Shown: piece by piece, positions 33,981 to 50,904 of the stretch
Numbering within the stretch: the stretch's first letter is position 1
Layout: every line of letters starts with the position of its first letter
Sequence record: LC727695.1
Direction: 5' to 3' (one strand)
DNA length: 64,000 nt
Made by a program: the position numbers and the translations under genes
The notes under the pieces: model-generated
Databases searched by the model: none
Seen by the model: only the letters and a program-made list of their open reading frames with translations
What the model was told of the DNA's origin: nothing

Positions 33981-34287
33981 CGTTATGTTCAGGTAAGTTC
34001 GCTACGCTTACCCCGCCTCTCGTATTGCAGGCAGCTGCATGTCACCATGCAGACCAGACTATATCTTAACCTTCACCCTAGGTGGTCAGGTCCCTCCCAT
34101 TTCCACTCGCTTGAGTGTACTCCGCGTAACCGGATAGTCGTTGAACGTTCAATCCATTTCTGGAAAGCTTCGCTGCTGATTGTCTCATTGAGATGTCCCA
34201 GCAATTAGAGAGGATTTACTTGACTCTTTCGAGATCAAGCAGGCAATTTGACAATATCCATTCCTGAGAGATGGATGGATATTAATT
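33981..34287 (-). mobile_element. Group I intron without homing endonuclease (307 nt)
   Basis: P1 GGU|AAUU pairs with AAUUGCC with U-G at the splice site; core AAUCAGCAG, GUUCAACGACUA, AAGAUAUAGUC; terminal G before AAG; splicing restores DFHGG-KGVI in frame. Confidence 0.92.
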
Positions 34288-47913: not shown

Positions 47914-48117
47914 TTATTTTGCTTTTAACCACTCTTCTAGTGGTGGTAAATATTTCTCATGCGCCCAATTAATGATTGTTTCTACAACAGGACCTTGTAG
48001 CTCAAGGTTTCCTGAGATTTCATGCGGTTCATCAATAGATAGAACCCACGTATGTGGCGCGATGCGTTCAGTTGCTTTGGTTAAATACACATCGGGCATT
48101 AATGTTAAATTAAGTTG
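47914..48117 (-). CDS. nvRNAP beta-prime N-terminal subunit, exon 2 (gp56.1-like)
   Basis: Splicing gives NADFDGD-QLNLTLMP, matching the NADFDGDQM catalytic loop; 67 aa. Confidence 0.9.
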   Translation of the reverse strand, partial: QLNLTLMPDVYLTKATERIAPHTWVLSIDEPHEISGNLELQGPVVETIINWAHEKYLPPLEEWLKAK

Positions 48118-49641
48118 CACTATCTTCATACAGCATCGTCAGCGACATGTCTAAAAATCATCTGGGTCATTTTCATATTTAAAAATGAACCCATTAATTG
48201 GTCGACGGTCTTTCTTTTTGAGTTTGCTAGTTACTACTTTCTTTGATAATCCAAGATCGAGATATGCCTGCTTGGCTGATTTGTATTTCAAAATCTCGCC
48301 AGTTTCCACATTTTTCACAAGTGTGGTCTTATTTTTAGCCTGACTATACTCAATGGATTCATCCCAGGTTGGCCATTCTGAACCAACCCGACGTACAATG
48401 TACCTATCCATAATGACTGGATAAATTGCATGTCCGCTAACTTTCAAAGAAATCGTACCTACACTAACCCCTATCGCCTCACTTGCTTTCTTTTGCGAGT
48501 CATATTTCCTGATTTCACCCGTAACGATATCCTTTATCTCAATACCGTCGTGCTCAAGAACAATTCCGTCCGTGTTAATTCCGCGATTTTTCAACATTCT
48601 CATGATCGCGGTATTCTTTGCTGATCCAATATAACCGGTTTTGATTGCATTTCCATGCAACACATTTTCACTCTGGGTTACCCATTCTAGGTTATCGGGT
48701 ACTGTATTGTCACGATCACCATCTATGTGGTTGACCACTTTCTCATTGATGGTGTTATCGTATTCAATAAATGTCAGTGCAGCTACACGGTGTAAATTCG
48801 TTCCTACATAGGTGCCATCATCTCGACGCAATCCAAGATCTCTGTATCCAGTTGTCGCCAAACTTGTTAATTTAGCTGAACCTTCAAAAAGACTTATGAC
48901 CTTGAGTTCATCATTGATTGCATAGCAGGTAAAACTAGGGATGAAATAATATCCTGGGAAGGTGGGAACCTCCAATCCTTCTTCCGGGAATTTCCAAATC
49001 AAGTTTCTAGGATGAATATTGTCTTCATCTCCATCAGAAAACAATATTTCGCAGCGACTAACAAACTCTAATGGCGCATGCCAGCCTTTAAAACACACTG
49101 CTATCAACTTAGTAACATGAATGGGTAGTCTATGCCATGGTAATTCAAGAACGTAATGTCGGTTTATTGGATCTATCAATTTATCCAAAAATCGATCATA
49201 GACTAACCCATCCAGAGTCAGTCTATAACGCCCGAATGTACCGGGAATCACAATTTCTCTCGATTTGGGTATACGACTGTAAATAAACACATATCCTCCA
49301 TTGGAAGACATGTCGCTGCTGTACCGTCCACTTAATATCTCCCGACATTAAGTAACTGCTCTAGCTTTCACTAGATGGTGAGACTATATCTTCTTCCCAG
49401 AGGGAAGCCTTCTATTTCGGACCACTTGGCCCTACTCTACTCCCTTGGCTGCTTTCGCAGTGGTTTCGATAGTCGTTGAACGTTCTTCCTATCTCGCCTC
49501 ACGGCAATACGTAGAAGCTTCGCTGCTGATTGTCCAATCCTAACACTTTTCAAACCGTTACATTTTAGCTTTCGCTATCTGCTTTGGTAGTTAGGCTCTA
49601 AGGAGGTTCCAGCAATTAAGAAGGTTAGGAGACCAATTAAA
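48118..49641 (-). mobile_element. Group I intron (1524 nt) carrying an HNH homing endonuclease
   Basis: P1 GGAGAU pairs with GUCUCC with U-G at the splice site; core AAUCAGCAG, GUUCAACGACUA, AAGAUAUAGUC; terminal G at 48118. Confidence 0.93.
48151..49311 (-). CDS. Intron-encoded HNH homing endonuclease (gp56-like)
   Basis: LHRVAALTF...VNHIDGDRDN...NLEWVTQSEN HNH motif; two C-terminal NUMOD1-like repeats. Confidence 0.9.
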   Translation of the reverse strand: MSSNGGYVFIYSRIPKSREIVIPGTFGRYRLTLDGLVYDRFLDKLIDPINRHYVLELPWHRLPIHVTKLIAVCFKGWHAPLEFVSRCEILFSDGDEDNIHPRNLIWKFPEEGLEVPTFPGYYFIPSFTCYAINDELKVISLFEGSAKLTSLATTGYRDLGLRRDDGTYVGTNLHRVAALTFIEYDNTINEKVVNHIDGDRDNTVPDNLEWVTQSENVLHGNAIKTGYIGSAKNTAIMRMLKNRGINTDGIVLEHDGIEIKDIVTGEIRKYDSQKKASEAIGVSVGTISLKVSGHAIYPVIMDRYIVRRVGSEWPTWDESIEYSQAKNKTTLVKNVETGEILKYKSAKQAYLDLGLSKKVVTSKLKKKDRRPINGFIFKYENDPDDF

Positions 49642-50904
49642 ATCTCCGTCGAAATCTGCGTTTGGAGCCTTAAGGCATAAAACTGACATGCTGATAGAAT
49701 TATCATTAATGTCATCTTTTACTTTAGTAATAAAGAACTGCTGCGTAGATCCACGTTGAAGCGTTGGATTTCGGTGAAAAGTACAACCCATCCCTTTATA
49801 AGGGGCTGCTTCTGCAATTAGCTCTTTAAATAGATCTGCAATGATTTGGTTATATTGAAGTACATTCTCATATACAAATGAGAATGCTTCACGAGTTGTC
49901 ATGTTAAACTTTGCTTTTAGTTTATTGGTTAGATGATACTTTAATAATTGACAACCTACCCCCCAAGGGATATGTAGTTCATCATAATCATGCGGGTCAC
50001 TAATAGAAGTGATTACTGCACGTGCCGTAGCGTTGAGACGAGCACCAAACATGTGACGCCGAGCAAGACCAGGCTTTTGAGCAATTCGTGATTTTGCGTA
50101 GATCTCGTAGAACTGGCCATATAGTCTTAGTCCTCGCATAGTCCTATTCTGAGCTTTAATTGGACTAAGTGGTACAGATGATGCATCAATACTAGCGAAG
50201 GTTAAGGTAGCATCAATTGCTGCTTCAATTGGTTTATCTAAGTAAGTACCAGATGTGGTTGATTCTGCTACGAAACAGAGTTTAGAAGGAACTGGTAAAT
50301 ATTTAGGGAATAACTTATCTTTATTCTGAGCAACGAATTGAGCGAATTCGGATTTATTATTAGAGATAATATTTGCATCTAGTAGGAATTGGAAGATCTC
50401 ATTGAAATTATCAATGAAGTGATTTAATCCTCTTTCAAATCCTCGATGCAGTAGCCTATCTACTTTCCTGCGTGTTTCCTTAGAACCAATAGATTCTACA
50501 TCGTATCGATAAGAAGTATCAGTTAGATATGCTAAGAAATCGAATTCTTTAGTTACTAGATATCCGGTTAGCATAATGATTAAACGTGGGTTAATTAGGC
50601 TACGTACATGTTTTGGTGTACGAACCCACATTGATGGTTCGATAGGGCGGCTAGAAGTATTGACAACTGGAGTATTACAAATATCACAGATTACTCCGAG
50701 TTTATGTGCGTCTTCGATTGCTCGACAATCACAGCTTACACTACTTTCAATTGCTTCTGAATCTTGGAAATGAGAATAGAAATGTCTATCAAATTCTTCT
50801 TTCTCATCTGAGTTACTCGTATTGTAATCATTGGCATAAATTCGTTTACCCGTAAATTGATCATGTACTTCATCATGATCAACAACTTTGGCATAAAGAC
50901 CCAT
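49642..50904 (-). CDS. nvRNAP beta-prime N-terminal (catalytic) subunit, exon 1 (gp55-like); spliced product 488 aa
   Basis: CDC...CDIC zinc ribbon, RRHMFGARL, HRNPTL, PNADFDGD. Confidence 0.93.

Follow-up and report, generated by a model that had tools for sequence, protein, structure and literature searches.

A nuclease gene looped out of the P9.2 stem of a group I intron in a phiKZ-like jumbo phage, with its start and stop codons in the predicted helix

Repression of phage intron nucleases by RNA structure, which the original prediction took as its starting point, is indeed established for T4 I-TevI, and splicing is harmed once this repression is lifted (PMC2988022, PMC3073962). According to the summaries given in these reviews, a hairpin masks the nuclease's ribosome-binding site in the td/I-TevI system and likewise for I-TevII, I-TevIII and Aeh1 mobE (Gott 1988; Gibb & Edgell 2010, reviewed in PMC2988022, PMC3073962), and ribosomes that enter the T4 intron structure lower splicing (PMC2988022, PMC3073962). 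The T4 hairpin is local and hides a consensus Shine–Dalgarno (SD) sequence about 8 nt upstream of the AUG, and an internal late promoter relieves the repression. T4 has already established both that starts of intron nucleases are occluded and that translation conflicts with splicing, and the locus described here is a modest variant of this known layout.

Our locus is like that of I-TevI in several respects. A phage intron encodes a nuclease, the start region of the nuclease is buried in predicted RNA structure, a stable local hairpin covers the initiation region, and the ends of the ORF overlap structural elements of the intron (“core creep”); translation and ribozyme folding would be antagonistic. 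Unlike in T4, a consensus SD is absent from the hairpin, the only upstream candidate being imperfect and outside the stem, and no internal promoter is known. Moreover, the AUG has an additional partner, the region of its own stop codon 1.15 kb away, and this pairing is the ribozyme stem P9.2. The T4 nrdD (sunY) intron offers another comparison. Its ORF is reportedly located downstream of the core, and a remote 3′ terminal domain is said to activate the core. The large ORF between P9 and the 3′ splice site is common to both introns, and such a position means that long-range pairing must return the 3′ end to the core. We know of no pairing between start and stop codons in sunY.

The nearest relatives by family are the introns of phiKZ gp56, gp72 and gp179 (Mesyanzhinov 2002, as cited in PMC10914365) and the intron nuclease of PhiPA3 gp210 (PMC11620839). 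They share with our intron the phage family and targets in catalytic motifs of RNA polymerase; the nucleases are of the HNH type, and the 3′ tails are homologous. Our intron is at a different site, 18 nt downstream of that of gp56. In the introns of gp56 and gp72 the ORF is found in the 5′ part, and its SD is normal (AAGGG and GGGAG) and outside the closing stem, unlike in the intron studied here.

The intron, its host gene and its nuclease

The window is the whole stretch of DNA analysed, 64,000 nucleotides from record LC727695.1; all window features below are on its minus strand. It belongs to a phiKZ-like Pseudomonas jumbo phage; over the region its identity is 100% with phage Brmt, and 99.8–99.9% with fnug, PA7, W10-2 and OMKO1. 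The host gene encodes the N-terminal subunit of the beta′ chain of the non-virion RNA polymerase (nvRNAP; PHIKZ055 homologue). Exon 1 (49642–50904) was recognized from the ORF list and the Pfam family RNA_pol_Rpb1_2, the ORF at 50904–49591 having an RNA polymerase Rpb1 domain-2 match. The exon ends with ...NADFDGD, the catalytic motif of the beta′ subunit, and the intron sits directly downstream. Exons 1 and 2 were each searched separately against PDB 7OGP, whose chain A is labelled PHIKZ055 + PHIKZ056.1. The translation of exon 1 alone matched residues 21–441 of chain A (E = 2.5e-290), and that of exon 2 (47914–48117; QLNLTLMPD...KAK and a stop codon) matched residues 442–508 with 100% identity. 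The two translations adjoin at residues 441/442; judged from these alignments, the solved polymerase contains the fused exon product.

The group I intron is 1524 nt long (48118–49641) and matches Rfam RF00028 with 74.8 bits against a cut-off of 50, over the full length of the model (positions 1–253). Its 5′ splice site is directly after U49642, its terminal G is at 48118, and exon 2 opens with CAA at 48117. These boundaries follow from the intron-less phiKZ allele, which reads GAT|CAA without interruption at this site, together with the matches of both exon translations to adjoining 7OGP residues. P1 (49628–49647) lies inside the Rfam P1 region and pairs exon GGAGAU (49647–49642) with the internal guide GUCUCC (49633–49628); the pair at the 5′ splice site is U.G. 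This pair, the terminal G and the restoration of the host frame upon removal of the intron are those expected of group I. The catalytic core P1–P9, as aligned to the Rfam model positions 1–253, spans 49359–49663. It is followed by P9.1 (49328–49355), a hairpin with a 12-bp stem and a GGGA loop that is predicted identically in the homologous introns of KEN49 and PS119XW. The 3′ tail UGAAGAUAGUG (48118–48128), which ends in the terminal G, has homologues in the phiKZ introns of gp56 and gp72, whose 11-nt tails, UGAACAAUACG and UGAACAUAACG, each come directly after a hairpin. By family membership this is a group I intron of the self-splicing kind, and its splicing is predicted. A long-read transcriptome study has reported no splicing reads for phiKZ introns (PMC10914365). 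The RNA runs that we found covered about 6% of the sampled words of the region and were taken as infections by relatives that lack this intron.

The assignment of splice sites corrects public annotation, in which several records have a 71-aa “gene” and label the nuclease a hypothetical protein. A T at 48128 (C in KEN49, PS119XW, L005 and L006) creates an ATG and with it a 71-aa ORF (47914–48129); several public records list it as a separate gene, and it is really intron tail plus exon 2.

The catalytic region of nvRNAP beta′ is an intron hot spot, with three distinct group I intron sites within about 130 nt (49640–49770; L003 1050–1520, L004 3160–4545 and L001 229–1007 in other sequences). The site 49768|49767 is of the fnug/L008 type, with an HNH-NUMOD4 ORF, 49660|49659 is of the phiKZ gp56 type, and 49642|49641 is that of our intron. 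Both of the latter sites are occupied in KEN49 and run X12, with an 18-nt micro-exon between them that encodes ADFDGD, and fnug and L008 have introns at 49768|49767 and 49642|49641. A second group I intron of the window, ORF-less and scoring 84.2 bits with Rfam, is located in the nvRNAP beta gene (gp71/73; 33990–34285).

The intron ORF (48151–49311, 386 aa) lies in the terminal loop of P9.2 and has Pfam matches to HNH_3 (41.5 bits, cut-off 24.8, 1e-10), NUMOD1 (36.9 bits, cut-off 22.8, 4e-9) and I-HmuI_NUMOD-like (29.2 bits, cut-off 27, 7e-7). These domains mark it as an HNH homing endonuclease of the I-HmuI-like kind, with predicted cleavage activity. Compared with alleles that are about 2% diverged, the ORF differs at 15–17 synonymous and 7–9 non-synonymous positions, and this purifying selection, an indirect and the sole sign of function, makes it look functional in those lineages. 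Residues ~20–110 (48985–49250) resemble a degenerate second NUMOD4 + HNH module, in which an IPG..GRY..DG motif is followed by SDGDEDNIHPRNLIW without the first His; this suggests that the N-terminal third of the nuclease came from an internal duplication.

Public records disagree on the length of the nuclease (386, 366 or 345 aa). Our predicted start is the AUG at 49311–49309, the first in-frame start after a stop, and the stop codon is the UAG at 48153–48151. The original prediction saw no clear SD before this AUG, and a canonical GGAGG at 5–9 nt is indeed absent; an imperfect GGACGG is present about 10 nt upstream, outside the stem. An SD-like GGAGGA is found 3–4 nt before an in-frame GUG at codon 8. 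Although this SD is strong (-9.3 kcal/mol), it is too close to the GUG when measured against the 7–9 nt of the few window genes whose upstream sequence was read, and we keep the GUG as a minor possibility only. Likeness of the N-terminus to gp56 was considered as support for the AUG and dropped, as BLAST did not pick it up; the nuclease and the HNH protein of the gp56 intron, at 26% identity, look unrelated.

The P9.2 stem and its natural alleles

Two 13-nt arms, 49306–49318 and 48140–48152, are 100% complementary and 1153 nt apart, as a repeat search and the sequence itself confirm. As minus-strand RNA, the 5′ arm includes the AUG and the 3′ arm opens with the AG of the UAG, just as predicted. 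The proposed extension of this helix by UACAGCA/UGCUGUA (49323–49317 and 48135–48129) also exists, but it cannot be complete together with the 13 bp, because both use the CA at 49318–49317. What can actually pair is 13 bp + 5 bp or else 11 bp + 7 bp, and both registers leave 6 nt bulged out on the 3′ side. According to sequence, repeat search and folding, the 5′ strand of P9.2 (49306–49323) then comprises the outer UACAGCA and the inner GCGACAUGUCU with the AUG, and the 3′ strand (48129–48152) runs from AGACAUGUCGC, which overlaps the UAG, through the bulge UGACGA to the outer UGCUGUA.

The placement of the ORF in a loop of a P9-region helix also stands: the Rfam model ends at P9 (49359), P9.1 is next, and P9.2 follows as the last hairpin, 11 nt before the 3′ splice site. 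Since P9.1, a hairpin and the homologous 11-nt tail come in the same order as in the phiKZ introns, the helix is identified as P9.2 and the ORF as its terminal loop. The overlap of coding and structural sequence known as “core creep” (PMC3073962) is found at both ends of the ORF, where the P9.2 stem takes in codons 1 and 2 (AUGUCU) and, at the other end, the AG of the UAG.

A perfect stem of at least 13 bp appeared anywhere in the intron in 6 of 400 dinucleotide-preserving shuffles (1.5%). This frequency leaves some room for a meaningless chance complementarity; a chance stem that falls on both ends of the ORF is, however, far rarer than this, and this helix coincides exactly with the homologous P9.2 hairpin as well as with both ORF ends, so we give chance hardly any credence.

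Comparison of alleles bears on the same point. The intron of PS119XW, a phage of a different genus, is 92% identical and lacks the ORF, and has a hairpin at the same place, with outer UACAGCU, inner GCGA, loop CAUG, then UCGC, a bulge UAACGA and outer AGCUGUA (z = -4.1 when folded). Between UACAGCA/UGCUGUA of the window and UACAGCU/AGCUGUA of PS119XW, the innermost pair of the outer stem changes from A-U to U-A, a compensatory change, and in allele L006 a C-G pair of the outer stem has become U.G. The hairpin shared with ORF-less PS119XW, with its compensatory outer pair, argues that the helix is a true element of the intron. Sequence comparison shows the complementarity, the homology with P9.2 and, in the outer stem, a compensatory and a wobble change; P9.2 is a real, homologous stem of the intron and has become longer around the inserted gene of the nuclease.

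The covariation across related introns that had been proposed as a check amounts to these two changes in the outer stem; the AUG/UAG inner stem is invariant. Both informative pair changes keep pairing, and neither is in the AUG/UAG part; the inner 11–13 pairs showed no variation, and hence no covariation, among ORF-plus alleles up to about 2.1% diverged. Only about 0.5 changes are expected in 26 nt at that divergence, so this invariance carries no weight. The ORF-plus alleles, reached through a protein cluster and a phage collection, comprise six phage records (fnug, L003, being the only one read directly) and the Logan/ENA contigs L005–L008 and L010, the last of which holds the 5′ arm only. 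A 21-nt pattern taken from P9.1/P9.2 had no matches in viral_contigs or metagenome_contigs. The L005 copy, a 2%-diverged ORF-plus intron, is on a 1636-nt contig of run X11 from a bear gut metagenome.

On either side of the ORF is a copy of an 8-nt direct repeat, GACATGTC; being itself palindromic, it is an inverted repeat as well. If the ORF and one repeat copy are taken out of the ORF-plus allele, what remains is exactly PS119XW. The inner stem of PS119XW has 4–5 bp against 11 bp in the ORF-plus allele, whose AUG was supplied by the old loop CAUG. Two routes fit these sequences, entry of the ORF with duplication of the repeat, or clean loss in PS119XW by recombination between the repeats. It could be, then, that the inner stem is mainly a relic at the DNA level, in which gain of an ORF into the hairpin GCGACAUGUCGC, or its loss from it, produced 11 complementary bases and start/stop pairing was never selected. 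The exact relation with PS119XW, the palindromic core that makes the repeat both direct and inverted, and the recurrent loss of the ORF are all in line with such an origin. However, an account of this kind explains where the helix came from, not whether the RNA helix forms or matters, and a second intron, that of phiKZ gp72, also has a long closing stem; moreover, the motif does not recur through the genome as a dispersed terminal repeat. We regard a mere relic as decidedly unlikely, though the stem may in part have arisen in this way, which also weighs against reading it as a switch. We also asked whether a dispersed mobile cassette could have left the arms as its terminal repeats, and rejected this, since no further copies were found in the window or the nearest genome, where the arm motif had one match with 1 mismatch, at chance level.

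In the phiKZ gp72 intron (L011 2459–3400), a 14-bp perfect helix surrounds the ORF, and the ORF-less allele in the window has about 9 bp. Long closing stems hence seem to recur with ORFs, a parallel that supports a structural function for them. The stop codon of phiKZ gp72 is located about 35 nt into the downstream intron structure.

Further alleles have lost the nuclease. KEN49 has an internal deletion of the ORF that leaves MSSNG-stop, and its 3′ arm has two substitutions, by which one pair becomes a mismatch and another a wobble. The deletion in run X12 is a different one (48219–49304) and leaves both arms intact. These are two independent natural ORF deletions in which the stem was kept. 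In mapped reads of DNA runs we found two further ORF-plus variants besides a third deletion of the ORF, and several records have frameshifted or split nuclease ORFs. Decay of the nuclease is repeated, with at least three independent deletions among near-identical phages (48151–49311; runs X3 and X12; proteins P0003–P0009), as expected for the life cycle of homing endonucleases. The natural ORF-less, ORF-deleted and ORF-plus alleles form a ready allelic series for testing.

Folding of the intron RNA

The P9.2 duplex has an energy of -25.6 kcal/mol. In the minimum free energy structure of the whole intron (ViennaRNA, -439.1 kcal/mol), both arms are in local hairpins; in the unconstrained fold the long-range helix has a probability of about 0.01, and enforcing it costs +2.7 kcal/mol. 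This gap is within the error of the model, which ignores tertiary contacts, yet it is not in favour of the long-range helix. When the outer stem is enforced, the probability of the AUG/UAG inner stem is 0.85–0.87. The competing local hairpin of the 5′ arm (49289–49313) pairs ACAUGUCUUCC (49313–49303) with GGAGGAUAUGU (49299–49289); across the ensemble of the whole intron, the pair probability is about 0.98. Both the AUG and the SD-like GGAGGA are buried in this hairpin, and the 56-nt fold has -16.9 kcal/mol and z = -3.06. The local hairpin at the 3′ arm is weak (z = -1.2, not significant). Two RNA states are plausible from these calculations, with the AUG paired in both.

On another reading, the long-range helix would be rare and the working repressor would be the T4-style local hairpin ACAUGUCUUCC/GGAGGAUAUGU, with the 3′ splice site recruited by tertiary contacts alone. 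The high pair probability and the significant z-score agree with this, and the local hairpin would form about 1.1 kb of transcription before the 3′ arm exists. Against it, the outer P9.2 stem has compensatory and wobble changes, the ORF-less and ORF-deleted alleles keep the P9.2 hairpin, and 2.7 kcal/mol is within model error; the local hairpin is invariant and hence also without covariation. We consider this reading unlikely.

Proposed ribosome–intron conflict and nuclease output

The original prediction went further and proposed that splicing-competent folding and nuclease translation are mutually exclusive, so that nuclease output is coupled to the splicing state. Part of the first claim stands, in that a ribosome must unzip the helix at the AUG or the UAG; the open, translatable alternative state does not. 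The claim of a coupling switch finds no support beyond geometry, and the alternative state also buries the AUG. Since the AUG is paired in both states, opening of P9.2 as the translation-on state is undercut, and the states are not “splice” versus “translate”.

A true bistable switch would have closed P9.2 as the splicing-competent, translation-off form and open P9.2 as the splicing-off, translation-on form, with nuclease output reporting the splicing state. It draws on the footprints of ribosomes at AUG and UAG, which must overlap both arms, on two near-isoenergetic conformations and on the precedent of T4 I-TevI (PMC2988022). The conformation without P9.2, however, buries the AUG in a significant local hairpin and is not a translation-on form, and a need for P9.2 in catalysis would have to be assumed. 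In addition, transcription and splicing probably take place in the ribosome-free phage nucleus (PMC12908238). A switch of this kind is in our view quite unlikely.

Transcription of phiKZ-like phages takes place inside a proteinaceous nucleus that is free of ribosomes (PMC12908238). Folding and splicing would therefore not compete co-transcriptionally with translation, unlike in T4, and the nuclease must be translated from exported precursor or from excised intron. On a speculative reading, which we think very improbable, P9.2 together with the local hairpin would be a bistable element at work where the excised intron or exported precursor serves as mRNA: on arriving at the UAG, a rare pioneer ribosome would open the 3′ arm, set free for a short time the AUG opposite and so prime the next initiation. 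At the same very low likelihood, splicing would be finished before any contact with ribosomes, and a ribozyme stem would have given rise to a self-coupled, MS2-like long-range switch. In MS2, the “Min Jou” interaction represses a start by pairing it with a distant coding segment, and translating ribosomes open this pairing. There, translation of the upstream gene opens the start of the downstream gene; here, the partner would be the end of the same ORF, and the comparison is an analogy only.

The explanation to which we lean, and which we hold to be somewhat probable as a whole, is that the lengthened P9.2 stem with the HNH gene in its terminal loop is architectural and also keeps nuclease output low. 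The main job of P9.2 would be to close the 1.15-kb loop and so to bring the 11-nt tail, with the splice site, back to the catalytic core. With both ends of the ORF inside the stem, the folded intron would hide the AUG, and each initiating or terminating ribosome would have to open P9.2; nuclease output would therefore be low, and translation would work against the folded 3′ domain. The local hairpin would form first in transcription and mask the AUG until the 3′ arm is synthesized. Hiding of the start codon and conflict with translation can reasonably be inferred and match the known principle. On this explanation the helix would also form in vivo, occlude translation and matter for splicing.

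If the stem forms in vivo, the start of the nuclease would be hidden by a helix that the ribozyme needs anyway, with its own stop region as partner. If this is true, a selfish nuclease gene would have found a compact means of remaining near-silent within an essential polymerase gene. The T4 rule of keeping ribosomes out of the intron would then extend to jumbo phages, in which transcription and translation are separated.
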